Notes under the pieces: model-generated | Seen by the model: the letters and a program-made list of their open reading frames with translations, nothing else | The model's database searches: none | What the model was told of the DNA's origin: nothing | Position numbers and translations under genes: made by a program | Part shown: in pieces, positions 21,670 through 63,870 of the stretch | Numbering within the stretch: position 1 is the first letter of the stretch | Layout: each line of letters starts with the position of its first letter | Source: Bigelowiella natans CCMP2755 | Lineage: Eukaryota; Protista; Cercozoa | Direction: 5' to 3' | Length of the DNA stretch: 64,000 nucleotides | Assembly: GCA_000320545.1 (NCBI GenBank) | Contig: ADNK01003345.1 | Coordinates: 18,985 to 82,984, forward strand

Positions 21670-23250
21670 TGCGACAAATGCTGCGAGTCACAGATGGCCT
21701 TGAACAAAATCCGACCATCACATTGCACAAACACCAGAAACGCATCCCTTTTTGTTGTTGCGTCTCATTCATCAACACAATGAGGTCAAGTTCATCATTC
21801 ATTGTTTGTTCTTCAAGATGATCCAATCGCAGATCGTCGTGTGGACATGGCCTTCAGGAAGTTTTTGCTCAGAGTGGAGGTCTTGCGCCGTCAGAATTTT
21901 GCCGCCAGTGTCATTGCCTCTCAATGACCAAGTCATGCCATTTTGGCAAACCAGCTAGTTGATTTGCTAGTCACAGTCCTCACTGAAACCAGTTCGAGGC
22001 ACTGCACTTTGCACACTGCAAGTGTCTTGCAACACTTTGGAAGTGTAGTTCTTCATCATTGTTTCATTGTTTCATTGTTTCAAGTCCAACATCATTTTTG
22101 AACTTGAGGGAAAGTTGAAGCAGTGAAGCAGTCCAGCAAGCAGCCCAGCGCAGTCAAGCAGTCAGGTTGTGCTCATCACAGCACCAGAGCAGCCAACGTG
22201 TCACTTTTTGGTCCTCGTTGACATTTCAGCTCGAAGCACTGCGTTTCGCACTTTGCAAGTCACGCAACACTTTGGAAGTGTGGTCGATCACTAAGTTTCT
22301 TTCCTTGTTTGTTCGTTTCTCCCTTTCGAGCGATCCGAGACGAACCTTGACCTCGATCTCAACCACTCGTTCGTTCATCGTTCGTTCGTTCACACGCGCT
22401 TTTGCAATTTCGACTTTTTTGACGTGCAGCGGTCTTCAGCATTGCACTCATTGCTTTGCACGATGCCAGCTGGTTGCCATGCCAAAGTCAAAAAAGTTGT
22501 TTTTTTCAAAAAAATCATCAAGGTGAACTCAGAACTGGCTCCACCCGTGTCTTTGCTCTGGTGCTGCGCGCTGAAGCACGAAGAAAATCGAAACTTTTGT
22601 TCCTGAGAGTTGGCCATCAAAACTTCAATGGCCGGAAAACAAGTCATTTGGTTTGAGTTTTGCAAACAAAAAAGTTTCCAAGCGGCGCAGCCGATGTCGG
22701 CTAGTTGCGAGTGACCAAGCGCCAGAGCGTTCAAGCCAGCAAGTGGTCCTCGCGTTTGCCACCACCACGTGAAACGCTGGCATGAGGCGGAGCTTCCTCA
22801 CGCACGCTCCAGCGCTGGCAGCGCAGCACATGAGCACGTTGTCTGTTGGCTGTTCAGCTGTGCACCGCCGTGTCTCGAGTGCCAATCAGCGTGACATTTC
22901 ACTTGCTCGTTCACTCCACTTGCGCTCAATTGTGACAATGCGTGCGTGAAGCATTGATCATTGCAAGTTCTTTCACCACACTCGATCTGGCATTGCACGC
23001 AGGTTTTCCACACGTGCGTGCATGATCCTGGGCGGATCGATCGATCGATCAATTGTGATCCCATGGAGTGGGTTTCAATGACACGCACGCATTGGACATG
23101 CTGCAGAGACTTCGTGCGCCATCATTGAATTGATCGACGAATGAACACACGGAGCAACGATGTCACACATCACGCCATGCTACGTGCACCAGTGCACAAC
23201 TGCTGCTGTTCCAGCAACGCACAAACCAACACACCTGCAGAATGCTTCGT
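21670..23250. other. TpA-depleted intergenic block 1
   Basis: Manual count finds 6 TA in ~1.6 kb (21956, 21968, 22046, 22292, 22702, 23181), all in CTA or TAG context; CA, TG and CG are abundant. Confidence 0.92.
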
Positions 23251-23851
23251 CACATCTATTTTTTTTCAAAAGCATGCACACAGACGCATCATTCACCCGT
23301 TGATCCGTGCTCACACACGGACTCAAGCACTGCATTCTGATTGCAGTCACATTGATCTGATGAATGCTACCTTCTATTTTGTGTCTCTGCTGGCCAGGAT
23401 TTACAACAGGATGTTTTTTCGAAAGCGCATGTTCCTGGTCCACAGTCACAAAAACCTCGCATGATTCCTTCCAATTGTATTTCATGTCCCAGAGACCTAT
23501 GGCATCTTTGTAACAAGCATTACCGCATCTGAATAGGGTTACTGTTGCAATCCACCTCGTCCCCCCCCCTCTCCCTAGATACAACTTCATCAAACCGATT
23601 TAAATAACATGAAAACACATCAATTCCTTGCAACTAATTTGACGCGGTAACGTATGCTTCACAGAGCTCAATGGTAATTTCTATTTAAAATATCTCATCG
23701 ATAGTACCTAAAAGCGCACACGGAGCATAATGTAGCATCAACTCTCATTTTACATGTTTTGCAAGTATAAAGATACCTAAATGAAATAAGTGACATTAAT
23801 TAATATGTTTGATCATGTCAGTTTGTCAGTAAAATTCGTCATATATGTACA

Positions 23852-23929
<78 letters not shown>

Positions 23930-24022
23930 TATAAATATGAAGTTATAAATTCAAATACGATTCAATTGCAATACTTAAATTAGAAAGATGGAACAAAATG
24001 GTTGCTTCATTGTATCAATTGA

Positions 24023-25758
24023 TTACTGCGCTGTAGCTTTAAATCCCGTAACAAATGTGGTACAGAAAGATGAAGACCTGACAGTTGACATTTAATTTAT
24101 TCACATTTCCAAGCATGATAACATCAAAAAAGAAGAAAAGCAATCTTTTCAGTTAATATCCAATATGCTACTACAACCTCGTCACGTTAGAATACTTCCT
24201 AACGATGTCAGGACTGCACTTCAATTCCGATATGAATTCATTTGAAACATATCTAACAAGAAGAACCAAATCATAGTGCAAATTATATGACAGAAAGGTA
24301 TTGATGCTTCTTAGTATAATTGTAGGAAGCCGCCATATCTTGAATTATTTCCCATTTTTATCAATTATTCACATGTACTTGAGGGACCGCCTTGTATTCA
24401 ACTATCGACAATAAGACTTCTCGATGCATGAGAAAGTCTGAAAGCTTGTTAGACATTATTTCTACGTAAAGACATCAGATATACTACCTTTGATTGACCC
24501 TCCTTAAGAGCTTTGATTTAGCAGCTTGCCTCAGTCTATGTGAGATACACAAGGTAGATACATTTACATACAACTGTGACGGATAATTCTGAATCAAGTA
24601 GCTTCTTTCTATTCTGACAGTGTGTTTCTATATCCCTAAAAAATCATAAATTTGTGTGATCACTTCGCATTATTACATCCTCATCAATTGGTGCGATGTA
24701 ATGTTTTAATGATACCTCCGCATTTGTTTCTCTGTGGATGGGGCATATCTATATTCCATCCACAACAATGAAATTTATTTAACTAATTAATTGTAAAAGT
24801 ACGACGTAAAAGTGCATAAAAACCAATTTTCTGCAGTAATTATTAACGGTACGACGATTTTGATTGCACATCGGCCGCCACAAAAAAGGCAGTCATTTTG
24901 GTTAGAAGTTTCGTGAATTTTATTATTCCTTTTGGTCTATTTTTTTGTGAATTTCATGACACTGAGATTCGTACGAGTCGTATAATATGTTTGCTGAAAC
25001 CGTCTGTGTGCAAAAAATACTTCGACGACAAAAAAGGTCATTTGTTTCGTCGTAGTATTTTTGCTAAACCTATCTGCTATATTATCTACTTTCAATTTAT
25101 AGAGGAGATAACTAATGAATATGATATCATAGTATGATTCTGTCTAACACCTGCATTCATTAAGAGAAACGTCCACAAGATATTTCAGCTTATCCCTAAG
25201 TGAGCAGGAAATGAGGAAGAAGAAAGGAGAAAGTAGAATTTCTTGAAATATTAAGTTATCATGGATAACGATGTAACATAATGATAGCTATTCTCAATCA
25301 AAAGTAATTAAATGATTTTACATATATATTATATATATATAATATGTGCATATACATATATCAATTTCTCTGCCATAATTAAGCTAATATCAACATCATC
25401 ATCATAAGCACCATCATGTTGAAAACTTATTCCTATCTCCTACTTTATATTTTCAACACTCTGAACTGTAATATCTGATAGTCCTCTCAAATCCAAAAAG
25501 TGTAGCTTCTGCAAGGAATTTAAAGTCAATCAAAACAAACATTTTGGTCAAATTCAGTGAGAAGGACGGAAAATATGCTGTATCCCAGAAGAGAAAGAAA
25601 AGAGAAAAGAGACAAATAATTATGTATTAGACATATCGAGTGAGTGAGAGTTTTCTGTATATTGGCATAAAAGATTCACACCAATATTTATAGATAATAA
25701 ATAAAATCTCTGGCATTTTCGCTTCACTACGATTCCTCTCTGACTTCTCACCTCTCAC

Positions 25759-25790
<32 letters not shown>

Positions 25791-26032
25791 GATTAACAAA
25801 AGTGATTCATTGTGTACTCACGTCTGTACCGGGCAACATTCTATAACTTTGCTTATATCTTCATCAGAAATATTTCTCAAATCCCTCAGACTAAGGTATC
25901 TAAAGAAGGATTATTGTGTGAAAGTAGTATTAGGATAGATACCGGAAGATACCATGTGATGTTGGTAATACTAATAGTCGTTTACATATTATGGTACATA
26001 TGCAATTTTGAGTAATGGTGGCTGTAATGATA

Positions 26033-26064
<32 letters not shown>

Positions 26065-26713
26065 GATGATAATGAAGATGATGATGATCAGAATATGATT
26101 ACGATGATTAATATAAAGTTTATATTCCATACATATATGCATGCATGACATGTATGTGGTCAAATTTTCTCGAAGATGAGCACAACCACCTGATTTCGGT
26201 CGGAAACATAGGATTCAAAACTATTTGACCGCAAGATTGTATTGAAAGCTACAAAAAATCATAGATCATGAATTCAATGCGTGAATTTATTAAGAATCAA
26301 TACCCACTTCCATTCTACTGCTGCTGCTGCTGCTGCTGCTGCTACTTACTGCTGCTGCTACTACCATTTTAAGATGACGGAATGGTGTGTGTAGGATATA
26401 TTCACAGTGAAATGGGGAACCTGTGATGTAGCAATTTGTTTTTAATTCGAGTTCTATTATGTATCTCTACGATTCGAGAATGTATAATTTAGTATTTGAA
26501 GCACATCCTGTCAATTCCAGCTCTTCCAAACAAGTGAACTGAAAACACAATCATCGAAATTGCAATTATTTATTAAATAAGGTAGAATTATAGTTTCAGA
26601 TACTTATGTTGCCCAAATTGCATGAACCATGATTGTTGTGCATTTTATTTTTATTTACCATTGGGTGATGAGTCTCTCCCAATTCTTTGCAATCGAAAGC
26701 TGATTTCCATATT

Positions 26714-26750
<37 letters not shown>

Positions 26751-26879
26751 ATGTATATAACATATATACATATATACATTTATATTTAAAATTTACATAC
26801 CTTAGAAAAATTGAGTACAGGTAATTTATATATGTGATTTCTTTCTATATCTTTTTTTTACTGACTCACGTAGAGCCGG

Positions 26880-26925
<46 letters not shown>

Positions 26926-27047
26926 ACATCACTGCCAGTTTACACACGTATGTCTGTAGCCCGAAAGTGTTTAATCGTCTCTTGAAGATTCCCTGGACAA
27001 TAAGACGACAGAGGAGAAAGACAGAGAGAAAGAAAGAGAGAATACGT

Positions 27048-27086
<39 letters not shown>

Positions 27087-30000
27087 TGAAAGCACACAGG
27101 AATATGTATGGTTTACACTAATAAATGTAAAAACTCAATAATTTCCCCTCTCTTCTCCTCTATATAAACGGTGAAGCCTGAGATGAATGATTCACAAGCT
27201 AAATTTCTTACATAGAATGTTGGACGCAGAAGATGCAAATGTAACAGTAGCAGCATCGGCAGCATGGTATCTAAGGAATATATTGATTAGCAGTAATAAG
27301 TTTTTCGCTTGTTTCCAAAGAACTCTTTCTTTTTATCATTACCACCCTAATACGACGTCATCTTACTCTTTCCAAATATGTTATTATGCATAGCAGCTAC
27401 TACTATGTATGATTCTGAATTTGGAAGTTGATAAATACGAGTAAAGTGATGAACATTTAACGGAGTATGTTTTTAGAATTATCGAGTAACAAAAATAGAA
27501 TATGACAACCTTCTTCTGGTGCTACGATGATTGCTGCTAGTGTGTGTAATGAAAGCCATATCCAAGTATGCTAGTTTCTTGCAGCTTCTCACTATCATCA
27601 TAGTCACAATAATCACTCAGTATACACTACAACCAACACATCCTGATGTTATTATCATAATTAGTTAGTTTATTGTCATGATAACATTAATTACAGTTTT
27701 TGGGAATGTACCTTTATTTAGATTCGTAAAGTAAGTTCATGTTTGTATTCAACATTATAATAATCTGGAAAAATTAATTTAGCATGTACCTGCTCTCAAG
27801 CCCGTACTATTTATTGTCTTACAACCCGCTATTGACAAACCTTCGAGACTCGAACTGCGGACGATGTTGATGATAACAGTAATGAGAATAATTATTCAAC
27901 AAGAAGTCGTAGTTAATTGCTGTGTGTGGGAATAAGCGATAAACAGAAATGTAGCATTTTCTAGTAGGGTTACTTCCACTTCTCATAATAATACACTGCT
28001 TTCTCAGAAAACAAAAAATGCAAAAGAAAGGGATTCTAGGTGCATGTGGTGACAAAAGAACACTGGTAAATGTCAGTGATGGTACTTGCAACGATGTAAA
28101 ATCTTTGAAAGGGCTATATTTGAAAGCTTTTTCAAACCTAGGAAGAAGAATACAAAGAGTAACTTTTCATTATTTATTTACTTATCAATAATTACTTTTA
28201 TTATTTTAATTAATATATGGTGGAATTAGGAGGGGACGGAAGAATGATAGTTCCAAATTTCGAGAAAAGATGAGAAGATATTCATGCTCGCTTGTTAATA
28301 TTATTCGTTTAGAATGCTGATTTTCAATACGCTATCATTTATTTCTTTCGTGTGGGAGTTATATGTGTGTGTGAGTGTGTGTGTGTACACAAAGAATGTG
28401 TTCATCATGTTCTTTTTCATTACTTGCCGCCTACGCACCTGTGAGATCAAGAAATCTCAGTCCACGTGGCACTAGCTCGCACCAACTCTGAAAGAGAGAG
28501 GGAGAAAGAGAGAAAGGGTTTAATGTGTAATATTTCGTTTCTGATGTGTGAAAAATTAGTCATTCATTTTTTCAGGTTTCTGAGTATGCACGGGAGGTCG
28601 TAGTAGCAAAGTGTAATGATGGTATTGACCATCGTGTGTGGTCAATGTCATCAACTATCATCCACACACGGCAAAATCCCTCACGCACCTCTCCAGTCAC
28701 GTTGACGCTAACGTTAGCGATGTAAAGTTTCTCAAGCGTATCATTCTCAAGAGAACACCCACAGCATGAGAGAATTAAAAACAATCCTTTGTCTACATAT
28801 TTGCACAAATTGTGATGAAGCAGATCATATGTTGTAAGTAGCAAGATGAATGGGGAAAGTCACTACATGAAATATCTGAGCAGTGAGAGAGCTGAGAATA
28901 ATTCAATTGTTAGCAGGGAGGAGGAGGAGGAGGAGGAGGAGGAGGAGGAGGAGGGAGACACATTTCATCCACAATTTGCACACAAATACACACACCCTAT
29001 GCACACACACATACACACATATTGCATACATGTACATGTACACACATTTTAAACATGCTTTGTTTTGCTAGTAAGTTTTACTCGATAAATAATGCATGTC
29101 ACCACCACCATCTACGAATGATTAGTTTCACTATTGGTGTGGTGTTCATCACATGAATGAACATTGATACCGTCTATTCTACGAAGTCCGCTAAGATTTA
29201 GAGAGCGTAAGTGAACTGCAGGTGTTAGAATATATCAATAATGTCAACACACTGCATAAACACAACCACCAACACAGATAGCAGCTATTTTTTTACTATT
29301 TTCTTCATTGATCTACCAACTACTATGCGGTAGCAGAGTGATCTAGTTTACATAATGATTAATTAATTATTATTCATGATAAATGCTGCCATAACATCTA
29401 CTCAAACAATGTCACCTCACACTGTTGCTGCTGCTACCACACGAAATGATGATTATGCATGATGAATTAAAAAAATAATGGAATGGTTATGTTATCGAAA
29501 TGTGCAAGATGTGTGTAGGTTCGCTTATATACTAGTAGTATTAGTAGTATTAGTATTAGTAGTAGGTAGCAGTAGTATAAAAATTATTATTTTTGAATGA
29601 TTATCAACTAACCAACCAATCGCCATCTTCTCTTCTTCTTATTCTTATTCTTCTTCTACCAAAACTTCAAAAATTCTATTTGCCTTGTGGATGGATTATT
29701 CTCAAAACACTAGAGCCTACAATATGATGATGATGATAGATAGATAGATAGATGATGAAATCCACAGTGAAATGTTAAATTATTGTCTGTAAAACTACTA
29801 ACGCGACAATGATGATAACAAACGACAACCATGACAATAGCTTGGGTAGCATAGTAAGGGATTGATTCTACTTCGTTCTTAAAATGGTAGTAATCGTGTT
29901 ATTGCATTACTTATTATTTCTATTTCAATCAGTGTCATTTTCTAATTGCGAAACGATGATGATGATGATGATGATGTTTCAAAAATGACTTTGGAAAGAA

Positions 30001-30115
30001 AGAAGGAAAGAAAGAAAGAAAGAAGCAGGATATCCTATGTGTGCCTGTCCTCTTTAATTTCTTGAAAACAACCTCCTTGTAGTCTTTATTAATCACGATG
30101 CAATAAGGACTACTG

Positions 30116-30150
<35 letters not shown>

Positions 30151-31044
30151 ACTACAACTGCGACTGCCCTACTGCTCTATGAGTTTTTCTTACTTGTAAG
30201 TCTGGAACACATCGAAACGTCAAGATCGGTAATCATTCTGCTGCGTCTATTCTAAAGAATGTTTATTTAAAATATGATGACTCACAGCAGTAACAGCAGT
30301 AGCCGATTCATTTTTATTAAATCTAACATAAAGCTAATTCCGAGTAGCAACAAACGTTTTCTCAATTATTCATTTCATACTTACAATTAACGTCACCCCA
30401 TATCTCTCCAACATATATGCTACATTACCGTTAGCAGCGGGAAAACAACGAACCCTTGGTCTGTAACCTCATGAAGATGTCTCAGCTGTAGACGAATTTG
30501 TGAGTAGGAAGATAACGATGAAGGTGATGATGACGATGATGACGATGCTGTGGCTTTAGCAGTTGTTGATGGTGGTGGTAATGAAGTAAATAGCTGGCAA
30601 TGATCGGAGAATGCCATCTTTAGAAGCCCTTTCAATCTACTGTTGGTTAATTTTAAGCGATCTTTCGCCTAACACAGATAATAAGGGAAATAGATTATAC
30701 AAATAAGAAACGGCGGATTCCGTTGTCACGAATGCCTTTTCATTATGTGCCCGACTTTATGAAAATGGTAGTATAAACTTGTTAATTTACCGGAAATTGT
30801 TCGATCCGAATATCCGACATGTATGAAACAACGTCGCTTGCCTACACGAGGGGGGTGGGAAAAGGGGCTTTGGATTATCACGGGAAGCGGTTTATGTTGA
30901 TATTTCTTATGATTATTTCCTTGATTGACCATTGATTTCCATTGGTTTGACACTGCAGAGACGCAACAGAGGTCCTAAAATGTATGTGGCAAGAAGAATC
31001 CATCAATGAAGAAGACATCTCGAGAAGATTAATGTGAAACTGTG

Positions 31045-31079
<35 letters not shown>

Positions 31080-31634
31080 GTTGTCGTCAAAAAATATGAT
31101 GATGGCGTATCGACCTTAATAGTCAGAAATGATAGTATACCCTCTCTCCCTGGAAAATGACGGCAGGATGATGATGATGATGATGATGACGACGACGACG
31201 ACGATGGTGATGATGAGGGGTGATGATGATGATGACAATGGAGAGATTCGATTCCAAGACGCAAAGAAATGATAACATCACTGGCGATAATGTCTGCAAG
31301 TATCTGACCTACTATGATAACTAATACCTGCCAGAATTGCCGTGCCGATTTGGGAAGCAGCAGCATCAGCAGTAGCAGAATCTGTTGTTCTGATAGAAAT
31401 TCTCTTTCGCGATTTCTTACTTACTCCGTAATAATTTTGAGATGAACGAGAGGGAAGCAAAATTGGACATTGCCCTCCTCCTCCTTGTTGTAGTTCCGTG
31501 TCCTCCTCCTCCTCCTCCTCCTGTTCTTGCCTATCTCTTGCTCTCTTATTCCCAATCATCATCTCTTTATTTATTACCGGGAGTGAGTCTCGTGGGTAGG
31601 AGGAATGGGTTGTCGTTGTTTGTCTTGTCTGCAT
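24023..31634 (-). CDS. F-box/leucine-rich-repeat (FBXL-like) protein, many short exons
   Basis: F-box split over exons at ~31110-31170 and ~30900-30960 (EGILSFLTIK|DLCCVSAVSNQWKSMVN). LRR exons include ITDLDVSMCSRLT (~30200), HLRSLNLSGLRRID (~29190), GLRFLDLTG (~28450), LEGLSIAGCKTI (~27830), LEELELTGC (~26510), YLSLRDLRNISDEDI (~25870) and LHFLDLRGLSDIT (~25480). Start and stop positions are approximate. Confidence 0.82.
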
Positions 31635-31639
31635 GTGTC

Positions 31640-32880
31640 GCAGGTGTTGAGTTGCAGGTAGATTTGGTGCATTGCAGGGTGGGTTTTAGTTGTCGCACCA
31701 GCTGTTTGTGATGGTGCAGCTGGCAATTTTGCTCCTTCAAAATTTTGTGAAACGAGGTCGACTTCGGTCGGCACTGCTTTCATTCATTCATTCGTCATCA
31801 GCGCTGCGTGCTGTCTGTGCATCGTGTCGAAAAACAAATTGTGATCAACGTTTCAATGTTTCAATGTTCTGCTCGTTGTTCTTCTTCGTCTAGTGCAACA
31901 AAATGTCACCGGGTTTGACCGTGTTGTGAAAATTGTGACGCCAACTGCACGACCGTCTGCGTCTCACTCTGGCACTCGTGACGTTTCACCATGGTCAAAT
32001 GCTGACACGCACGCATCCGTTTGAAGTGGATGGGACAGAACAACTTCAATTTCTCACAGCTCTTCTTGCAGCGAACTTTGGACCAGTGGAACTCATGCTA
32101 GAGGCAAGCATGCACTAGTTCTGGAGTTCAGTGAAGGGCTTTCATGCGGGCTAGCGCTAGACCTAGCTAACAGTGTGCGTGCGTGCCTAGGTGCCAGCGT
32201 GCCAGCGACCGCCCTGTTCATCACGCCCATCGTCACAGCTAGACAGTGTCGATCTTGTTGTGCTCAAACAACGCAAATGACAGCGCGGTTGTGCATTGTG
32301 GCGTGCAGATGGACTTGAAACATCCTTCACAACTAGACAAACTAGACGAACGCCATGGTGCTTGGTGGAAAGTGTCCATCACATTCGGCGGCACTCCATG
32401 CATTTCACACATCCAAACAGAAAGCCAATGCACAGTTCAGCGCGCACGTTTGTGCACGAGGGGGAGAACAATGAAAAATGGGGTTGCAGAGGGCTCATGT
32501 CATGCGTCGATCAATTTCTTGATGAGTTTGCTATTATCATCATTGTCAATGAGAGGACACGCATGCATTTTTGCAATCATGACGATGATGTCTCATTCCA
32601 CCTTTGACCCTTTGAGTTTGCGCGTGGTGAATTCTTGGCATCTGCCACTCATCGGATGAGTCGCTCGTCTAGAAAGGCAACAGCATCATCAGTGTGTAAC
32701 AAAAACAAGCCTACAAATTGTTGTCATCACTGCACACACGATAAGCTTCATCAAATTGTGTAGATGCCTTTCACTACAAACAACATCCAATCATTGCAGA
32801 GAACAAAAAGAAATGCATTTGATTCTGACCTTCCCCCAAGTATGAGCACGAAAAACTTTTTGATGGCTCTGAAATGATGC
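31640..32880. other. TpA-depleted intergenic block 2
   Basis: Manual count for 31700-32690 finds 14 TA, of which 11 are CTAG. Confidence 0.9.
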
Positions 32881-32881
32881 A

Positions 32882-33583
32882 TCACATGTCAAAAACCATG
32901 CATGCTAGGAATGGAAGGCAATGTTCAGGTTGGGATTTGTCTTCTTCCTCTTCTGTCGAATTAGACACTGTGCAGGGACAATGCGGGCTAACAATGATGA
33001 TGGTGAGTGAAATAGTGATTGGCAGGTTTGTCGTAGGCTTTGGAAAGAGATGAATCACATAAGTGACGCGCAGTATACCTTTGTCCTAATTTTGTTCGGC
33101 TGACAGCAAATCCAACGAACAGAATTGGAACACCTTAACACACACACACACACACACACATCCATCATGAAGAAGCCCAATGTGAACAATGTGACGATGA
33201 TTTGTTGATGTGAGCGCATTCATTACCAAGGAAGAATATGAGGTGAGGAATTTCTTGTGCAGGATGATAAAATTCAAATCCTGTCAAAATATCATCATGA
33301 TCATCATCGTTATGATCACATGGGCTGACACATGTCACCATCATCATCATCACCATCATCATTCTCATGGTCATCACAATGACAAACACATCATTACCTT
33401 CAGGGCCTAAATCAGCTTCCATCGTTTCGTGGAAAGCTTTATGCAGGCCCTTTGACTGCAATTGTACATCCTGGTGAATGGGTGAATGGATGAATGGAAG
33501 AAAACAAGCAAGCGACTTCATAGTAGTTTGTAAGTAAGTAAGCAAGCTCTCTAATGTGCACTTTAAACTTGTCGCAGAAAGAG

Positions 33584-33624
<41 letters not shown>

Positions 33625-34362: not shown

Positions 34363-34393
<31 letters not shown>

Positions 34394-35501: not shown

Positions 35502-35537
<36 letters not shown>

Positions 35538-35873: not shown

Positions 35874-35906
<33 letters not shown>

Positions 35907-36573: not shown

Positions 36574-36607
<34 letters not shown>

Positions 36608-36714
36608 ATGGTTATTAGCGGTGTATGTAAATAGGAGGGAGGAGTGCATGTGCGTGCGAGAGCCCATACATGGCACTGTGTGTTTGTTTGTGGGGTGTGT
36701 ATCTTCGTCATTAT

Positions 36715-38395: not shown

Positions 38396-39584
38396 AGAAG
38401 TTGTGTAAGCGACCTTCAAGTAAATGCCAGACACCTTTGTCAATCCACCCCCGCCGCTTCCCTCCGCATCTGCCATAACCACCTTTCCATCTAGCAGCGG
38501 GAATATTCCTCAACTTAGAATCTGCATTTCCTTCTTGGCAAAAGGGTGCTCTGTGTTACCTTCGTGCAGACTAGATGCACGCAGCATTTGCGAATGATGA
38601 TTGTACGCGAGTATGTTATAATCCCATTCTCCCTTCTGAGAGAATGTGGTTTTGAACAAGATTTGCCACCATCATTCAAAATCAACTGCCTCCTGTGATA
38701 TTTTTAAATTTGAGATGCATTAACTTTTACAAAACTCCCCTCTCTCTCTCCCTCTCTCTCTTTTCCTTAAGAATGGGTTCCCTTAATTTATCATGACAAA
38801 GTGCACCACAAACTCACTTCTCGCTTGCACTATCTGCTCCCTCAATAATCTTATCTTTAGTCCACATCCTCCGTTCCACTTCTTTCTCTTTCTGTTTTTT
38901 CTTTCCTCCTCTTCAATTCTATTCTCCCGGTGTTATTTCTGCTTCCCTCTGTTGTTTTTTTCGCTCTTCCGAAAGCAATGTACATGTCACATTGTGGCGG
39001 CATACTATACATCCTACGATAATAACATATAGCTTGCGCTTATATCTAACATGTACTGATACATCTCTAGTCTCGTCTATGTGGATGAGCACGCACATAT
39101 ATTAGCTGTGCGATGCAGATTTGGACGCGTGTATTTGCAGCCATGCAAGCGCACGCATGTGCATCGGATATGGATTCGTCATCAACAATTTATATTCATC
39201 GTGACGTAGTCTCTAGCTATTTCGACTTTCGATCGTCATGTTTTTATTCCTGCCCAATTACATTATGCTGATCTTGGCAAGCAGTACCCATATGAGGCGC
39301 TTCGTGCATGCAAGTAGGGATCGTAGCTAGGCAATTGTGGAGACATATTTTTGCGCATGCGCTGTGCTAGAATTCATCATTATATATATGAGATTATGAG
39401 CTAGGCGGATGGCATGGCAACAATCGCGATGGAGCCGATCGAAGATTATTTGCCGAGTGCATGTACATTGTGATGGCTCTGTTACGACATTCGTAGCACA
39501 GCAAACACGCTAGCACGGACCCAGCTAGTTCCAAAGTGCTACATTAGCACCCTGTTTTTCCATTCTTATTACGTTCCTCCTTCA

Positions 39585-40640
39585 TCAAAAGTCATAATTA
39601 TTTGCATCGTTACGATCCACATTCGCTTTTCCGATGGAAGAAGAGTTGATGGCACCACTGCCTTGAATGCTTCCAGCCGCCACCTTCAGATCGTCGTTGA
39701 CGATGCTGCCTGGAACTTTCGCCCCAGCAGGGAACATGTCGTCATCATCACCCTCTTCAGCATCGTTCGACAGAAAGGCCTTTTTCTCTTCGTTGTCTCC
39801 ATGCTCTTCTTCTTGCTCCCCTTCCCCTACAAGGCTTCCTTCTTCATTTGGGCGTGCGTCCGGGATAAGGTAAGGTAGCAGTACGAGCGGTAAGCATGGT
39901 AGTATAGAAGTGATAAGTGCGACTAGCCAGAGGTTCTTGAATTGATCTCCTTCATCAGTGGACCCATTGGGCCGCACGCCCATGACGTCTAGGAGGAACG
40001 CTCCTGAGTAGTTTGATATGTTGCTTCCGAGATTCGAAGCAGAAGCGAGAAGAGCAAACATCGTCGCCTCGAGTCCCTTGGGGCATAGTCGCGACAAAAT
40101 CATGACGGCTGGCATATAGTTGAATTCCTTAATCACAGTCTGAAGTGCCGCCGAGCCTAGGACGAAGACACGATCAGATAGCCCCCATTGTTTGTTCCAT
40201 CGAAGGAAGACGATGATGTTGAAAAGGGACAATCCAGAGTATACCAATGTAGACCAGAGGAAGATCGTTCGGTATTTCATGTTGCTCAAGTAGCGGTTGA
40301 AGATGAAGATCCCAATGATTGCCGTACCAGAAGCAACAAGTCCTATAGCAGTGGTGTAGAACCAATCGGAGAAATGGGGGCCTTCCGGATACTGCTGGGG
40401 ACCATCTGTGAAAAAATAAAAAGTGGCTCCCTCGATAGACATTGAAAAAAGCGTCTGGATCAATGTGTAAGCGTTCACTTTCGCAATAATCGGTGGTGTC
40501 CAGCGAAAGAAGCCTAAATGAAGAAGATATTCAAGAGTTATTGATGCTACATAAAGATTGACTAAAAACCATCCACGATCAACAGAACTAGATATGGCGC
40601 TCATTGTCTCTTCTCTCCTTTCTTTCAGATAACCCCCCCC

Positions 40641-48946: not shown

Positions 48947-48981
<35 letters not shown>

Positions 48982-49362: not shown

Positions 49363-49405
<43 letters not shown>

Positions 49406-51699: not shown

Positions 51700-51738
<39 letters not shown>

Positions 51739-53880: not shown

Positions 53881-54697
53881 TAACCAAATAATCATATTGT
53901 CATCATGTTCGCAAGTTGCACAGTACTATCCATGTCCACTCTCATCATATTGCATACTAGAAGTGTATTGTGTCATCACGCTGCTCGCTGGTGTTTGTTG
54001 TGTTGTGGAATATAAATTTCGTCGTCGTCGTCTCTTTCTCCTTCTTCTTCTTCTTCTTCTTCTTCTTCTTCATCATCATGACCATCACCTAGAGAGTTTA
54101 GGAGGGCGGAACAATCAATGCTATATGCCTCAGAGAGTAAGTAGTAGTAATTATAACAATTAAAACAATGCTGTAGTAGTAATGACAACAATTAAAACAA
54201 TGCTGTGCTCGTCAGAGAAGAAGTTATAATAATAATAATAGTAATAATAATAATAGTAATAATGCTACGTGCCTCCTCAGAGGGTACACAAGAAGAAGAA
54301 GAAGAAGAAGAAGAAATAAAAGAAGAAAAAGTTGATATTCTTACATCATCCTTAGCTATTTTTTTCTCTCCTACCTTTTCTTTTCTTCGTCATCATCCTG
54401 TTCTTCTGTACTTGCTCATGCGTATGATACTACCTAAAATAACAATAATTATTGTTGTTTTCCAACCCATCCTTGTCACAATTTACATCATTATAATCAT
54501 CATCATCATCATCATCATTATCATGTTTGGTTTTGTTCTTCTACCTCTTCATCATTCTTTAAATCTCAAAAAAAGTTTTACTCCTACCTACTTTTTCTAT
54601 TTCTTCTACTACTACTACTGCTACTTCTCTACTACTACTACTACCACTACTTCTACTACTACTACTTCTACTACTACTACTGCTACTACTACTACTG

Positions 54698-54732
<35 letters not shown>

Positions 54733-54759
54733 GTTTGCAAATGAATACTGGCATCAGGT

Positions 54760-55785
54760 CCTAGGAGATGCATGGACGCGGGATGAGACGTTCAGAATGG
54801 GACTTCGAAAGTAGAGAGTTGTCACATAGTAGTAGTACTAGTAGTATGAATGGTGCTATTGTATGCTCCTGTTTTTTATTTGTTTTTTCCTTCTTTTTGT
54901 GCGTTTATCTATTCATTGTAAAGAACACTAGGCTTGAACATTGTAGAAGTACAGAATCATATTCTTCTTTTTGCTGTTTGTGTGTGTGAGTCGTATGTGT
55001 GTACGATGACGACTAGTGATGATGATGATGAGGATGATAATGATTATGATATGGTTCCCCTATGTTCAGATTGCACTGGATCGCCATACAATTTCCTTGC
55101 CGCGTTCGAATAACAAGTATTACTTACAACATTACTAATATCAATTATCATCAACATCACCATCTTCATCATCATTCATTGTAGTGATTTATTGAAGGAG
55201 ATCTAATCTGTTTACTAAATAAACAATATTGTGTCCCATAATACCTCCTAGTCTGACAGGGTGTTCTTATCGGTCGTAAACGACTAATTATTAGAAATAA
55301 TGAAACATATTCTACAATTATTGCTACTACTGCTTCTTTCTACCGAATTATCTTTTGTCTGTTGTCGTCCATTTTGTAATTGTGCTATACTGTATTAATC
55401 ACTTCTTTTCTTCTTCTTCTCCTTACTATTATTATTATCATTATTATTATTATCATCGACAGACTACTCGATACGTACAAGACCAGATGAGCAAGCAGGG
55501 TATGACCAACAGCGTGAAAATAAAGATGATTGAAATGATGATGATGATGATGATGCTGTGTATTATTATACGATATATTGAGGAGGTGATGCTTTACAGT
55601 ATCTTCTACCATTTCATCACTACAACGAATTTCAAAAACGTCATCATCATCATCCTCATCTACATCATCATGATCATCTACATCATCATCATCCTTATCA
55701 TTGCTATCATATACAATCTTCATTTTCTCTTTGTTTCGATTGCAGAGCTACTGGTCCTCGATCATGGTTTCTGCAAGGTTCACAG

Positions 55786-55820
<35 letters not shown>

Positions 55821-55966
55821 ATGAAAGTAGGAGGAGGAGGAGGAGGAGGAGGAGGAGGAGGAGGGCATCGAATGGTGGTAGTGGTACTAGTAGAAAGTTA
55901 CTGCAGATGGTCCTACTAATCTCCTTCACTGGCTCCTTATATGTCATCATCATTATCTTACTACTG

Positions 55967-55997
<31 letters not shown>

Positions 55998-56669
55998 ATA
56001 ATAATAATAATAATACAAAGGAGGAGGAGGTGATGATGATGATGATAGCCCAACAACCAAGAGTTGGGGTCATCATCGTAATCATTATCATACACCTCCT
56101 TGGACTCTACTTCATTCAGAAAAAGATGCCAAAAAGTGGAGGTAGATTTCTTTTTCATATGAGAATGATAATAATATTATAACAGTATTTTTCCTACTTG
56201 GCACCACTATCATCATCATCAGCAGCATCATCATCACCATCGCTGCTCTCACCATCATAATCGTCATTACATCATCATCGTTATCAGTATAATATTTTCT
56301 CTTACATATGTATTCAGATATCCTGGAAAGGTTCGTGATGAAGTACCTGGAGAAATTAGGTAGTAGTAGTAGTGGTAGTAAATAAGTAGCAGTAGTATTT
56401 GTACCGTATTCTACATTTTATTTGTACAATAAATATACACTAAAATTTCCTTCTATCCTATTTTCTTTCTCTTCTCCTCACTTCGTTCATCAGAGACTTT
56501 GATATATCAAAAAGTAGCGGCCAGTACAATATTTATCGGTAGTGATGATTTGTTTATGTAGAAAGTTATTCCTTCATCTATGATCAAGATAATATTAATC
56601 AATCACATCATCCTCGGCTTAATCCATCGACTTAGCTCTCCTGATCAACGGATACGAGTATACCTATTT

Positions 56670-56701
<32 letters not shown>

Positions 56702-57285
56702 TTTTACTATTTATATTTACGATGTTTAGATGGGTCTTTGTCAGAGGATTTACAAAGGAGAAATTTCGACTTTCCATTTCGCAATTAAGGTTTTGTTTCT
56801 AGCATGAGGCTAAGAAGAAGAAGAATTAGATGTTGGGGAGGGGGAGGAGAAGGTGGTGTTAGGCGACTGCTGAGTCTACTAATGCATTCGTGAGGAGGAT
56901 GCTGTGTTGTCGTCGTTGTCGTTGTACACTTGGCTTTCAGTTTGAACGATTTCCTTTCCTCCTCATTCTTATGAGTATCCATCAGTAAATATGTGATGTT
57001 GAGAACAACAAACAGCTATCCATTTGTGCTTATAAATGCTCATATGCTTTTAATTGTCATAATTCTATGTTACCACAATTGATTATTCTAGGTTGCAAGG
57101 ATTCACATACAATCAGGAATGCTGCATTATAGAGTGTTTAGATATTTATTTGGGTAATTGTATTAATTATAACATGTTGTAATTTTGGAAACCAATGAGC
57201 TTTGTTGTACTTGTTCTGAGAATGTTTCACCACTGCTACTATGCTGATGGTAACGACCTGCATATATAGGCGCAGTATCAATATG

Positions 57286-57325
<40 letters not shown>

Positions 57326-58107
57326 GAATATGGCTATTAGCTATCCTACTGCTGTTAAGATTGCTAAATCCACCGTCATTGCGATGATGAAAGAATAACG
57401 ATGTCGACTGATCTAATAATAACATTACAGGAGAGGAAGCGAAACATCGTCATCATGCTGAAGAAGAAGCATCTTCCTCAGAAGTAATAGCACATAATAC
57501 TCCTTACTGCTGCGAGGATGATGATTCTGGTACTACTACTACTACTACTACTACTCAAGTGAGGATTGGAAGAATACAAAATTAAGAACATACGCTGATG
57601 ATCATTACAATGTGATAATGATTGCTATTCTTTCCTCACATGTCGTTGGTATAATTCTCAAAGAATATCTGCGTAAGCAGCTGAAATGTGAACAGCGTTA
57701 ATATTAATGTCTTTTCCGATGGTTTTGATCATGAATTTATGTCGCGAACAGCAGATGAGAACAGCATAGAAGGAGATCACACAAGTTTGATAACAGGCTC
57801 TACTACGACAACACGGATGACTACACCGATAATTGGAGGTGCTGTTAATGACATTGTGAGAAGAGATCACGATGATAGTTTGGATAGTGAGATCATTGGT
57901 AAGACTACTTCTGAGGTCAGAACAGAAGATGAAACTTCGAATGATGTGAACGAACCACAGCACTACGACAACCACTTGGCTTCTTCGCTGAGAGAGTTGA
58001 GCACTACGACATGCCACAACATTGATGATTTGAAAAGGCCAGTAGGAGAGGTTCCATCTCAATCTGAATTTGATTCTTTGTCTCACCTTGTGTTGACATA
58101 CATTTGA
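54760..58107 (+). CDS. Exons encoding a second discoidin/F5-8 type C-like domain and a probable terminal exon; either a continuation of the exonuclease gene or a separate gene
   Basis: In-phase GT-AG exons 55070-55116, 55463-55499 and 55746 onward give LHWIAIQFPCRVRITNYSIRTRPDEQAGATGPRSWFLQG. Further exons give WTLLHSEKDAKKWRYPG..VPGEIRDFDIS..FRLSISQL, paralleling the first domain. ORF 57688-58107 may be the last exon. Confidence 0.6.
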
Positions 58108-58119
58108 TCTACAACTTGA

Positions 58120-59063
58120 CGAGACAGGAAAATGTCTTGGCAATTCTGTGGCACACCATTGTTCTCTGAGCGTTTTTGCTTGAGTTGCATGCCCAGCATG
58201 TGTGACATTGCAAATCAAACACAAGCTAACAAGGCATTGCCACTTGTGCGTTGTGTTCACGACAAATCGGATGTGACTTCTGCGCAAAATCAAAATTGCG
58301 AAGAGCACATTGCTTGCGAATGAATCCATCGCCGAGCAAAAAACCTGGTGCGCACTTGTGACTGCTCCCATCAAGCACGATGCAAAGACAAAAAAGGAGC
58401 GCAGGGTTGGGGTTGAAGTTGCAAATGCACGATGTTGACAAAGATGATGATGTTGGTGACAATGATGATCACGATGACGATCATGATGTGGAAAATCGTG
58501 AAATCCAGCCAGAGTTGTCCAACAAGTGACAGTGATGTCACTTCTTGTGCACTCCACAACAGCTTCTTCTTCTGCAATGCCTTCTTCTTCTTTTCAACAT
58601 CAAAGGGGTGATGACACTGCAGACTGATCCTTCTTGGTGGAGAATTCAAGTTCAAGGAAACACGGACGACGATGATGATGTCTCTGGCAGTGCTTCACAA
58701 GAAAACGAGCGAACGACGGAAGAAGAAGGTGCAGGAGGAAAACATCACCAGCAAGCTTCAGCGTCACCACCACCCTCATCATCACCATCGTCAGGAAACC
58801 TCCCTCCCAGAAAAGGCGGTGCGTCGTGGCCAGCAACAGCGACGATTCGTGCACAACGTGTGAATCAAGTCTCAACGACATTCGTCTTGATTGCTGACAT
58901 CGCCACATTGCCATCATCCTCATCATTGCCACCACCATTGCTGCTGCTGTGTTGCCACTGCTGCCACTTGCCAACAAGGCGACCGACTCGCTGCACCTGA
59001 AGTGAGGTCTCCATTGGAGGTGAAACCACTGCCACTGCTTCCACTGCGACTTCAGTTTGCATG

Positions 59064-59115
<52 letters not shown>

Positions 59116-62100
59116 GGTTCGTCGTGTCGCTCATCCTTTTTCATCGTGCATGGAAAAAGTTGGCATCACTTGATTCCTCAAGGTTCTCCGGGGCTCTGGG
59201 GCTGTGAACACAACCAGGATCATCAACGAAATGCCCAGCGCATCGAGAGAGATTCTTGAGCTTGGAGAGTGGAGCACGCGCATCCCAACACCTTGAAGAA
59301 GAGACACTGCTGCTGCCACTTCTGCTGCTGCCACTGCCACCACTGCCACTTTGCAGACACACGATGAAGAACAAAAGACACGATCTTCTTGCGGATCAAG
59401 AGCAAGTTGTCAGTTCATTGCGACAATCATGACAGCGCAACGCTGCGATCATCACCACAACGTGGACACAACGTGTGGCAGCAAGTTCGCAGCAGCATCA
59501 AGTCACACACGTGTGGGTGAAAGCACGATGCATGCGATGATGGATGTGATGAACGATCAAAACCATGAAATTGCAACAAGTCGACAGCAGACAAAGCACA
59601 CAACAACGCACATCACGACGTTGTGCAATCACGCGCAAGCAGTCTTTCACGTGTGTCAATTGGTGCAATCTTGCACTTCATTGCACCCGCATTGTGCAGA
59701 TGTGGCAACGTCTGAGACGTGTGTGTGTGCGCGCATGCCAGCATGCCATCGTGTGTGGATTCGCATGTTGCATGTCCATCACTTGATGAAAGCAGGGTTA
59801 CACGTTGCTCGCGCGCACGCTGGAATGCGCGCAGGGCACATTGTCAGCCAGACTGGCAGAACGTGCACGTGCACAATGACACTGCCAAGTGCATCACGGG
59901 AGCGCGGCCACAGCACAAGTGGAGATCAGCGTCATTCTTCATTCAATGACAAGCTTCGCAAGTTTGCGCACGTGACAATGGCACTCATCGCACAGTGCCA
60001 ATGTGAGTGTGCAACAACGTGGCTGCTGCCATTGCCACGAGTGGTCATCCAGCGACGAACCGTCACGTTTCGCACAATCGCATCACCACGTTGTTTTCGT
60101 GCAATCCAAGCAACTGTCAACGATTCAACAACAGGCAAAACAGGTGATGACTCAACAATCAACACACGTCCTGTGCTTGCCGACCTCCGGAAAAATTGCA
60201 CAAAAACAATTCGTCATGCCAGCACACGTGCACGTGCACACCTCCGCTGCATTGCACAGCCAACAACACATTGGGATGACCATTGAAAAAGTTTGAACAC
60301 TTCGTTGCATCCGTCTCACACACAAGAGACAAACAGGTGCAACTTGAGCGCTGCAGCCGCTGCGTTGCACAGCCACATTGGGATGACCATTGAAAAAATT
60401 TGAACTCTTCATTGCATCCGTCTCACACATCAGCCAATGGCCAGAAGAGAAGACTGACTGGGGCTCCTCCTCGTGGCAGCAATGCAGACAAAAAACGTCC
60501 TGCGTGTGACACTGAAAGCACAACCTTCGTGTGACCAAAGACAAAGCACCCTTCTGGCCTTCTTGGCGGGGGAGGGGGTGGATTTGAGCCCTTGGATTTT
60601 CGCAAAAAGGGCGATGGCGACGGGGACTCATCCGCTGTTTGAGACAAAAGATTGCGATCAGAGTGAGAGTTGTTGCAAGTGCCAATCTTGCACAAATCGA
60701 CAGGACAACATGTCAATGAGAAAGCAAACCCATGGTAGCCGTGCAGATGAAGACGTTGAGAACTGCAAGTGCGTTGTGGCAGATCTGATGATGCACTTCC
60801 TTCCACCTTCTCCTCCAGACCACTGTTTGTCCACGGTGGCCATTGCAAGCATCCCACCTTCCACAAACAGATCAGTTGTGTTGCAATTGTTGTCAACATT
60901 CATGAAGAGGATTTCTAGATGTGTCCGGCATGCATTTGGTGCTGACATTCCACAAACAGATCGGTTGTGTTGTGATTGTTGTCATCATTCATCGGCTTTT
61001 CGATCGAACCACCCTCGCAGGATCCTTCAAGTTGAGGGATTGGGGTTGTCGCAGAACAAAAACATCCTGTGATTCTTCTTGTGCGCGTTGGTGCACTCAA
61101 AACTCATCACTCACACTCATTCTTGTTGCACACACAAGTGCTTTGCTTCCTTTGCTTGCGTGCTGCTCAAGATGAAAAGATCGAAGCACACAAAGGAGGA
61201 ATGCACAGGGAGAACAAAGAGATCAAGATTGCACGAAGCCGCACAGGTCATTGGTGAGAGGTGTTCGTGGTGGGGTCTGGACTGGTGAAGCACAGGCCCT
61301 CATCGGCTTCCATCATGAGCAGATGGCGAGAAAATGAAAACATGCGACTGTTCCTTCGTTTCTGTTCTCATGCCAATGAGCATCAATCATTTGGAGAGCC
61401 ACTTTGAGATGGATGAAATCCGCATTTCACCTCTGGATCACAGGAAATGGATGAGCACACAAGAGAGGCAGCTACGCAAGACAAGGACGATGTGCAATGA
61501 AGAGATGACACATCGTGTTCTGAAAAGCCATGGTGTTGCTGTGGTTGATGTGATGATGCTGCTGACAAAATGTGCCAGAATTGCAAGGATGCTGCTGTCA
61601 TGACACCATTTCATTGATGTGATCCATTTTCATTTCTGGATTGGAATGACCGCAAAGCAGCAGTTGATGGTGGCGAAGGATCCATGGTGCAAGATGTTCC
61701 GCAAGATTTTTGAGGCTGATCAGGGAAGTGAAGTGCATTTCATGCATTGTTGCGGGTTGGTGGCGAATGACAAAATGAAGGGAAGGTTGCAGTGCATTCG
61801 ACTTTTTTCTCCCCTTGAAAATGGTGTTGATGGGAGGTGGATGATGCGGAGCAAGGTTGCAAAACTGAATCAAACAACACACCTGGCTCGATTCCGGTCA
61901 ACTGATTGAAACACAATTCACATGTGACATCAATGCATTGAAATGTTTTTGAATGATCAGGAAACGACCGGAAAAGTGAGCAGTGCAATTTTGTTCATGG
62001 AGAAAGCCACACTGCCACTGCGTTCCATGAGAATTCTCTCCATTCCTGTCTTTCTTTGAACCACCATCGCCTCATCTCAACATTTTCAAACAAATCGTGA

Positions 62101-63870
62101 TTGATGGCAGGGCCACGACGAAGGAAAGGACCTTGAAGATTGGTCAAAGGATGAAGTGAAAGCGTGGTTAGGATTCTTGCAAAACAAGGGGGAGTTCGAA
62201 TTCAAAATCGAGAAAGTTGCTTGCCCGGGAGAATTTTTTGCTGCGATGACCAAAGCAGACCTGTTGAGACGTGCACCGAGCTGCGGGGACCACATCTCCA
62301 ATGCGAAAGAGGCGCTTCTCAGCAAGCAAAAAGGTGGTGTGCATGCTAGCTCAACAGACGTCTCACGCGTGTTCTCTGTTGCATGCTTTGTCATCGATCG
62401 ATGTGGAACAATGCCCACAGATGTTGCACGCAAACATCCAAGAGAATTCATTTTCATGGATGCGCACATGAGTGAGTGTGCATGTCAGCTCAACAATCGT
62501 CTCACGCCATTTGTGCAACACATGCAACATGATCATCATCTCTCAATTTCGTTTTCTCAATTTTGGTGTTGCATTGCAAGAGTTTCAATGGACTGTGACC
62601 TTGAGCACATTGTGTTGCAAGATTTCACAAATGATGGCCTTCATTTTGTTTTGCAATTGTCAGCACCTTCTTCTCCCGAAAGACAACCTGGTGAACATCA
62701 ATCCCCTTGAAATTCTCCCTTGCGTCCAGTTCATGTGTGCGTTCACTGTCAATGGTGCCACACAACACTCACACATGCACATGTGGCAAATTCAAATTTG
62801 ATTTTGTTTCAGCAAAACGCCCTTTCGAAATTCACAGACCGACAGAAACGAAAGTCGAATTGGGAGAGCTCACACTGGAGGGGGGAAACAATCAGGAGAT
62901 TGGATGTGCAGAAGAAATGAAGGAGGGAGATTTTTTCCATGTCGACGGAATGATTCACGCAGGTTTGAAGGAAAAGCAGTTGAGCAAAGAAGCCGATGAC
63001 AGAGTGTTGCTGCATCTACGCGCTGAGGGTTGTCAACACTTGAGGAGGCTCGAAGAAGTGGAAGGTGGAAATGCACTTCTTGTGGATGGACCCAAAGGAT
63101 CTGGAAAATCTGTGACATCTTGGACTTGGGCAAGGCCAAAAGCAAAACAGGGGAAATCTGTGTTGTGGATGCACGTGGATGATTTTGCGACTTCTCATGT
63201 TGCGATTTTGAAGCTTTTCAAGGATGACATTCGACGTGTCTGTTTCGGAGATGAACCAATTGAGTTTCAGCAACTCGTCAAAAGCGATCACGTGCTTGAT
63301 GCTCCCGAGGACATCATCATCTTGGACGGATTCCACAGGAAAGACCATGAGGAAATTTTGACACAGTTGTGGGACACCATTGATGATCTCGCACCAACTC
63401 GGATCAGCATCGTTGTTTCGTCAATGACGGCTACCTTTTCTGCACAAGAATTGAAGATGGCCCGTGCCAAGAAACATCGCATGGCATCTTGGACATTCAA
63501 GGAGTGCAAGGAGGTTGTTGAAAACAGGGCATTTCATCGACAAGTGGAATCAAAATTGGGAGGTCATGGTGACAAGAACGCCAAGTTGTTGCACAAATTT
63601 TGCTGCTCAGGCATTTCTGCCCGTTTTGCTTTTCATTTTGCGGTTGAAGAAGTGAAGGAAGAGATCAAAAGGGGTGCGATGAGCGTTGGAAATTTGTCAG
63701 ACACAGCAGAAGGAAGTGTGACTTCAGCAAATGAAAATGCAGTGAATGCACTGTGCGGAGGAGTGCGATCACCAAGTGGGGAAGCACGAGATGTCTTCGT
63801 GAGTCAATGTGCTCATGGACCAATTTTTTCCGATCAGGGTCAGGATCTAGGTTGAAACCACAACCGCGTT
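58120..63870. other. TpA-depleted subtelomeric block 3
   Basis: Manual count finds 10 TA in ~5.75 kb where several hundred would be expected from base composition. None of the ORF-track proteins I read wholly within this block contains Tyr. Confidence 0.95.
62110..63855 (+). pseudogene. Crinkler/RHS-like spliced gene: SAM/Pointed-like header plus P-loop NTPase, hypermutated and truncated at the telomere
   Basis: Exon ~62110-62333 encodes LEDWSKDEVKAWLG..MTKADLLRRAPSCGD (SAM/PNT-like). A micro-exon lies at ~62664-62690. Exon 62813-63855 has Walker A ALLVDGPKGSGKS, Walker B IIILDG, and SWTFKEC, KFCCSGISARFAF and VSQCA, which become CRN-like SWTFKEY, KFYYSGISARF and VSQYA when C is read back to Y. 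The family call is pattern recognition, not a database hit. Confidence 0.7.

Follow-up and report, generated by a model that had tools for sequence, protein, structure and literature searches.

The 64,000-nucleotide stretch of Bigelowiella natans CCMP2755 DNA analysed here (contig ADNK01003345.1, positions 18,985 to 82,984; hereafter the window) contains three blocks that have lost nearly all of their TA dinucleotides, and CTAG is the commonest context of the few that survive. We consider it probable that these blocks are near-saturated tracts of TpA hypermutation in which a 5' C or a 3' G slows the mutation of the whole TA site, with a supply of additional CTAG sites contributing to the pattern. 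TpA hypermutation of integrated viral and foreign DNA in this organism is already known from a 2026 preprint (Mettrop et al., bioRxiv 10.64898/2026.01.13.699255) and is only months old in the literature; the flank rule appears to be new, and the details added here are this rule, mutated insertion scars, and telomere repeats and a gene copy as targets. The advance is incremental: it adds a new property and new loci to a system already known, without establishing a new one.

In the B. natans assembly, the window corresponds to the telomeric end of scaffold_114. Its BT1 transporter open reading frame (ORF) matches chlorarachniophyte proteins, and its ORF at 62707-63855 matches the B. natans gene model jgi|Bigna1|146458 (aug1.114_g21166; P0125) of the Joint Genome Institute (JGI) with 100% identity. 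The window has 41% G+C and in most places about 78 TA per kb, against which the three blocks stand out. In what follows, a TA is called one-flank if it has a 5' C or a 3' G but not both, and unflanked if it has neither; CTAG carries both flanks.

21670-23250, unstranded: block 1, an interstitial TA-erased island with 6 TA in 1581 bp, 3 of them CTAG and 3 one-flank
31700-32690, unstranded: block 2, an interstitial TA-erased island with 14 TA, 11 of them CTAG, and a CTAG cluster at 32099-32343
58120-63870, unstranded: block 3, a subtelomeric TA-erased tract with 10 TA in 5751 bp

TA-free gaps reach 1572 bp, the largest of them in block 3, where TA falls to 1-12 per kb over 5.75 kb while CA and TG together amount to about 209 per kb (CA 620 vs TG 580 in total). 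Block 3 thereby displays TpA loss with CpA/TpG gain over at least three consecutive kilobase-scale windows, which is how a hypermutation tract is defined; blocks 1 and 2 show the same TA depletion, but their lengths are only 1.6 and 1.0 kb. Scans of both islands, block 1 and block 2, returned no Pfam, Rfam or tRNA match.

An exhaustive listing of the TA sites in the three blocks reproduced exactly the count of the initial annotation: 17 of the 30 are CTAG, 11 are one-flank (CTAC 4, CTAA 3, CTAT 1, GTAG 2, TTAG 1) and two are unflanked (TTAC at 59799 and TTAT at 32535). CTAG makes up 124 of the 4354 TA sites in the 55.7 kb outside the blocks, so that its enrichment within them is highly significant (Fisher p=1.3e-18) and is seen block by block (3/6, p=4e-4; 11/14, p=3e-15; 3/10, p=2e-3), and a 5' C or a 3' G accompanies 28 of the 30 sites (p=2e-10 vs the rest of the window). 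Relative to normal DNA, an imperfect proxy for the ancestral make-up of the blocks, the density of CTAG is 0.92, that of one-flank sites 0.048 and that of unflanked sites 0.005. Eleven of the 17 CTAGs are concentrated in the 1-kb block 2, where three of them are 8-bp insertion scars (see below). BLAST comparisons among the blocks and of the blocks with the window returned no homology beyond microsatellites and short local duplications, and therefore the residual CTAGs do not stem from one repeat family, the origin by which the initial annotation would have considered its own context rule refuted. The same kind of search found no TA-intact copies of the blocks within the window. In normal DNA the observed/expected ratio of CTAG is an ordinary 0.70. 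GTAC is not protected in the blocks (none seen vs about 23 expected, and 0/7 among sites with known ancestors). Since GTAC is likewise flanked by G:C pairs, the flank effect is base-specific, and duplex stability was rejected as its cause. A tally of NCAN plus NTGN gains against NTAN losses was also tried and proved uninterpretable, as the ancestral composition of the blocks is unlike that of the microsatellite-rich normal DNA.

The most direct evidence on the flank effect comes from a part of block 3 for which the ancestral sequence can be read from expressed relatives.

61110-63829, plus strand: TA-erased, telomere-truncated copy of a multi-copy P-loop NTPase gene (jgi|Bigna1|146458), delimited by cDNA alignments
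61110-61247, 61439-61491, 61645-61897, 61957/62116-62333, 62662-62690 and 62812-63829, plus strand: exon matches of this copy

The paralogues P0126-P0134 are expressed and TA-intact, and they encode Tyr where the copy in the window encodes His or Cys. With the cDNA nearest to each exon (L006, L008) standing in for the ancestor over 1870 aligned bases, we found that 43 of the 92 ancestral TAs had become CA, 43 TG and two CG, and that four were kept; non-TA substitutions amount to only 20 over the same bases. At non-TA sites the copy is about 0.5-1% diverged. All four surviving TAs (three CTAC and one TTAG) are ancestral and one-flank, so that survival is 4/36 for one-flank sites vs 0/56 for unflanked ones (p=0.02). 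CA and TG follow one another in random order within the gene (40 runs vs 44 expected, z=-0.87) and therefore do not reflect strand-coordinated bursts. At one-flank sites, the changed base adjoined the C or G flank in 19 cases and lay on the far side in 13, not different from 50:50. The neighbour preference proposed by the initial annotation is in this respect real, as the survivors with known ancestors are all one-flank.

Several further observations were made on this copy. The telomere truncates it near residue 450 of a family protein of about 650 residues, and the frame of the copy remains open; since a change of TA to CA or TG can never create an in-frame stop, the open frame across 61110-63829 is no evidence of function. 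The choice of product varied with the 5' base, T-TA giving TG 19 times and CA 7 times, and C-TA and G-TA together CA 23 times and TG 10 times, with CTAA changed to CCAA in six of six cases. Three of four CTAC sites with a following G or C survived and none of three CTACT sites did, which hints at wider context effects.

The fate of CTAG itself can be followed in insertion scars of the form XXXX-CTAG-XXXX, in which 8 bp were inserted with a 4-bp target duplication; only perfect duplications were counted. Across the window, six of 141 CTAGs have such duplications, vs 0.55 expected (141/256). Within the blocks we found 16 scars, only three of which still read CTAG, while seven read CCAG and six CTGG, exactly the two erasure products of CTAG; 13 of the 16 cores have thus changed.

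22180-22191, 22554-22565, 22718-22729, 22732-22743, 22805-22816 and 23185-23196: block 1 scars, all mutated
32183-32194, 32235-32246 and 32329-32340: block 2 scars with intact CTAG
31965-31976, 32079-32090 and 32117-32128: block 2 scars, mutated
59192-59203, 59734-59745, 59849-59860 and 60550-60561: block 3 scars, all mutated
17725-17736 (CTAG), 17905-17916 (CTAG), 17963-17974 (CCAG) and 39506-39517: scars outside the blocks

About 20% of the CTAG, CCAG and CTGG tetramers in the blocks are scars, vs 1.3% for the other 253 cores (p ~1e-7). The blocks hold 16 scars in 8.9 kb vs four in 55 kb outside (three CTAG and one CCAG), an approximately 25-fold higher density, and the intact cores, 3/16 (19%, 95% confidence interval (CI) 4-46%), all lie in block 2. 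If scars are born as CTAG, the 13 that read CCAG or CTGG demonstrate that CTAG is mutable in the blocks. CTAG is slowed and not immune, and the statement of the initial annotation that CTAG is protected does not stand in that form. The scars thereby serve as an internal, clock-like control whose original core is known, insofar as that core is correctly inferred. They look like excision footprints of a cut-and-paste element with 4-bp target duplications, and the TA-erased islands may be former landing pads of that element. Dating of the scars by duplications that differ only by a TA to CA or TG change was attempted and abandoned, with one candidate in the blocks, no more than background. Outside the blocks, at 18187-18198 (ATGT-CTAG-ATAT), lies a scar whose duplicate copies differ by one TA to TG change.

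The telomere repeats beyond block 3 bear the same signature.

63875-63946, plus strand: proximal telomere array (TCAGGG TTGGGG)x6, containing both TA-erasure products of TTAGGG
63947-64000, plus strand: distal, canonical TTAGGG telomere repeats

Here the telomeric TTAG was converted to TCAGGG six times and to TTGGGG six times. The perfect alternation of the two products is improbable for independent hits (about 5e-4 by our own arithmetic), suggesting an amplified 12-bp unit or phased hits.

Independent observations of the process come from the mutation-accumulation lines of Mettrop et al. (10.64898/2026.01.13.699255), in which two integrated viral regions mutate approximately 1000-fold above the rest of the genome, nearly all changes being A>G or T>C and virtually every one lying at TpA, at a rate of TpA to TpG/CpA of about 6e-7 per site per generation. 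These authors also listed 324 low-TpA genes and 124 TpA-depleted, CpA+TpG-enriched clusters genome-wide, and proposed an ADAT2-like adenine deaminase, the ADAT2 homologue Bn78255, as the mutator. Gene 146458 appears in their Table S6 list of low-TpA genes and in a second table of TpA-depleted genes. The preprint text makes no mention of flanking context, CTAG, telomeres or insertion scars, and contexts are tabulated at three nucleotides only. From its Table S2 we counted, and then checked by word search, 235 de novo TpA events, with T>C contexts of ATA 40, CTA 19, GTA 32 and TTA 38, and A>G contexts of TAA 36, TAC 25, TAG 4 and TAT 41. The mutated base abutted a 5' C or a 3' G in 23 of the 235 (9.8%, CI 6-14%), compared with an expected share of such flanks of about 20% in normal window DNA (p=2e-5) or 17% in the family cDNAs (p=2e-3), neither baseline being the viral region's own share. 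This shortfall points toward a context effect and is suggestive only. Four T>C events of the viral region in Table S2 lie off TpA (ATG three times, ATT once), though the preprint text places all of them at TpA.

The process that we propose would convert TA to CA or TG, a single hit destroying the target, so that tracts would be driven near saturation. A 5' C or a 3' G would lower the mutability of the whole duplex TA site about two-fold per flank, whichever base changes, and CTAG, with both flanks unfavourable, would be slowed to about 0.17-0.3 times the rate of unflanked sites. Once the exposure sufficed to erase about 99.5% of ordinary TAs, about 5-10% of one-flank sites and about 20-40% of CTAGs would remain. 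A second contribution would be supply, in that spacer-type islands would accumulate XXXX-CTAG-XXXX scars and would have begun CTAG-rich or kept receiving CTAG. The counts, the direction of the changes and their restriction to TA, the survival by context, the mutability of scar CTAGs and the absence of a side bias were observed directly; we infer the rates, as well as the site-level (two-fold symmetric) recognition, from a fit of our own arithmetic with rt=2.65 and with factors of about 0.5-0.7 for the adjacent flank and about 0.35-0.45 for the far one. It predicts a one-flank survival of 0.05-0.11, a CTAG survival of 0.18-0.41 (scars 0.19, CI 0.04-0.46) and a share of adjacent-flank events near 14% among the de novo changes, all three of which are compatible with the data. 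The extreme spectrum of survivors (17, 11 and 2) would arise because near-saturation amplifies a modest preference. Adenine deamination and thymine oxidation are both candidate activities for the enzyme and are not separable by sequence alone.

A number of points weigh against this reading. The samples are small, comprising 32 informative one-flank changes and 16 scars; the paralogue-aligned part holds no ancestral CTAG, so that CTAG was tested only through scars whose core is inferred. Judged by density, non-scar CTAGs survive far above the 19% of the scars (block 1, 3 vs 3.5 expected; block 2, 11 vs 2.2 expected), and either blocks 1 and 2 were very CTAG-rich at the start or some CTAGs were kept for another reason. 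The support from the de novo events is lost if CTA/TAG make up only about 12% of flanks in scaffold_10:336000-521500, and the inequality in Table S2 between CTA (T>C, 19) and TAG (A>G, 4; p=0.003) is something that a symmetric site-level model does not predict. Finally, with GTAC unprotected, the effect is base-specific, for which the model offers no physical basis.

The initial annotation had attributed the context rule to a strand-specific enzyme with a three-base motif that disfavours C-T-A or T-A-G, each flank shielding one strand and CTAG both. An additive two-strand hazard does fit the survival classes (about 0.005 unflanked, 0.048 one-flank and, by arithmetic, a predicted value of about 0.46 for CTAG), and the under-representation of de novo events abutting a C or G flank (23/235), with TAG A>G at 4/106, agrees with it. 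Such an enzyme would, however, place about 87% of the changes at one-flank sites on the open side, whereas 13 open-side and 19 flank-side changes were observed (p ~1e-9 vs 13%; p=5e-4 vs 30%). CTAA became CCAA in all of its six cases, and telomeric TTAG yielded TTGG as often as TCAG (6 vs 6). The mirror rule, in which the base two positions away matters, predicts about 87% on the opposite side and fails too. Since neither one-sided form fits, we consider strand-specific shielding unlikely.

Equally improbable to us is that supply alone is responsible, in other words that CTAGs were newly made by scars, or that the blocks were CTAG-rich, and that the survivors are simply the youngest TAs left by a mutator without any context preference. 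That supply contributes is evident from the approximately 25-fold density of scars in the blocks, from the three perfect scars among the 17 CTAGs, from the CTAA at 58227, which lies in a scar-like CAAG-CTAA-CAAG, and from two spacers with normal TA content.

17000-18400, unstranded: CTAG-rich, TA-normal spacer beyond the DNA polymerase gene's 3' end, with 35-80 TA and about 7 CTAG per kb and three scars
39000-40000, unstranded: CTAG-rich, TA-normal region where the BT1 transporter gene (minus strand) has its 3' end; scar 39506-39517 lies in the 3' untranslated region (UTR)

Together these spacers carry 7-10 CTAG per kb along with their scars, and block 2, at 11 CTAG per kb, lies above any normal 1-kb stretch of the window, which peak at 9. 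The interstitial islands therefore probably began CTAG-rich, which inflated the apparent full protection of CTAG when judged by density. Some of the excess of CTAG in these two islands was thus supplied by scars and CTAG-rich spacers and is not the result of survival. Supply is nevertheless not the whole story, because only three of the 17 CTAGs are duplicated while 13 mutated scars keep perfect duplications, so that decay of the duplications cannot hide many scars, and because the four residual TAs of the gene copy are ancestral, all one-flank and not insertions. It leaves the one-flank class (11 of the 13 non-CTAG survivors) unexplained, and the de novo flank counts point in the same direction as protection. 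A mutational sink, by which ordinary C>T changes at CCAG or CTGG would make CTAG, was rejected, as the gene copy (about 0.5-1% diverged) is far too young at known rates.

A third possibility, which we regard as very improbable, is that CTAG, and partly CTA/TAG, is shielded by a duplex mark or a binder (N6-methyladenine, a cytosine mark or a CTAG-binding factor), or that the CTAGs of the islands were kept by selection. A block at the level of the site would give protection without side bias, as seen, and the seemingly better survival of non-scar CTAGs than of scar CTAGs in blocks 1 and 2 is in line with it. On the other hand, scar CTAGs do mutate, there is no direct evidence of a modification, CTAG is ordinary in normal DNA (0.70), and, the gene copy being truncated and in decay, selection cannot account for its one-flank survivors.

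A base-calling or assembly artefact of a modified TpA base, for which the resemblance of the inner TCAGGG/TTGGGG repeats to a miscalled base-J-like mark might speak, or GC-biased conversion or drift near the telomere, is refuted for practical purposes, given that the ORF matches the 2012 JGI gene model exactly, that Illumina-sequenced mutation-accumulation lines show the same change de novo and that a comparison of the reference with T0 gave no flood of G/C to A/T differences (both 10.64898/2026.01.13.699255), that the BT1 cDNA from RNA-seq is 100% identical in three of four exon matches, that the blocks have lost only TA and keep AA, AT and TT at 50-115 per kb, and that the changes are confined to TA. 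In preferring enzymatic targeting over drift and GC-biased conversion, the initial annotation was therefore right.

Returning to hypermutation with flank-slowed sites as the preferred reading, we also put forward, as a speculation that we consider rather unlikely, that the mutator reads duplex TA as a two-fold symmetric site, so that either flank would slow both possible changes, that it would be a DNA-editing enzyme or complex without a described counterpart and differ in this from the known single-strand deaminases, that the islands are landing pads whose neighbourhood was marked by a defence, and that the edited CTAG footprints record repeated insertion and excision.

The tracts agree with the system of Mettrop et al. 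in organism and assembly, in the restriction of changes to TA to TG or CA, and in clustered TA loss with gain of CA and TG. That system was framed around foreign DNA; the targets here are a truncated gene copy, inner telomere repeats and two non-coding islands. With regard to foreign origin, the target in block 3 is a truncated copy of an expressed multi-copy family that may be of host or of foreign descent, and the scars are transposon-like but come with no element, while the islands have no Pfam match. That the process acts on telomere repeats and on the truncated copy of an expressed multi-copy gene family widens the foreign DNA framing toward a target defined by chromatin or domain.

Repeat-induced point mutation (RIP) of fungi resembles the process in being regional, dinucleotide-specific and near-saturating, with transitions in selected DNA and products symmetric on both strands. 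RIP, however, changes CpA to TpA and so creates TA and makes stop codons, whereas the B. natans process destroys TA and cannot create an in-frame stop; nor is a link to duplication or meiosis shown for the TA erasure here. The hallmark of RIP, C>T at CpA in duplicated DNA, is absent, since it is the intact, expressed copy that is rich in TA, a polarity that the telomere repeats bear out.

The A>G outcome is shared with ADAR and ADAT (TadA) deaminases. ADARs favour a 5' U or T neighbour as well as a 3' G, and in the substrates of ADATs the 5' neighbour is invariant (U33-A34). An obligatory 5' T is indeed found in B. natans, but, unlike with ADARs, a 3' G disfavours the change (TAG A>G 4/106; survivors enriched for TAG/CTA). 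ADAR and ADAT enzymes act moreover on one strand or on RNA, whereas the flank effect described here has neither strand nor side bias. The DNA-editing ADAT2 of amphioxus, cited by the preprint, prefers GAA for adenine and not TA. The flank rule, by which mutation is slowed by a 5' C and likewise by a 3' G, most of all at CTAG, with GTAC unprotected and no side bias, may serve as a fingerprint for candidate enzymes, and it argues against an ADAR-like preference as well as against the GAA preference of the sole DNA-editing ADAT2 studied.

APOBEC-driven kataegis is likewise an enzyme-like local hypermutation with a neighbour-base signature and a proposed role in defence. APOBEC enzymes change C to T at TpC in strand-coordinated runs, in contrast to A:T>G:C changes at TpA with interleaved products; strand-coordinated runs are not seen in the gene copy (z=-0.87). 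Base J of kinetoplastids is a modification of TpA thymines, present in TTAGGG repeats on both strands as well as in silent and subtelomeric DNA. The likeness lies in that an oxidised thymine could mispair and lead to T>C; base J is an epigenetic mark, however, while the change in B. natans is a heritable change of sequence. A literature search found no link between Bigelowiella and JBP/TET.

The inner edge of block 3 (58100-58230) is sharp, with TA dropping over about 100 bp from about 80 to about 1 per kb, immediately past an ORF that ends at 58107, which suggests a domain boundary and not a gradient. Elsewhere in the window, the zf-C4pol C-terminus of the DNA polymerase gene lies at 16681-17340. 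The BT1 cDNA (L001) stems from a public transcriptome obtained by Illumina RNA-seq, and its fourth exon match differs from the window by one mismatch and a 5-nt insertion or deletion. Both differences fall in the 3' exon on the minus strand, at 39535 and 39915, the 5-nt one (TTCAG on the transcript strand) being located in the 3' UTR; because the other exons are identical, they are strain or allele polymorphism.

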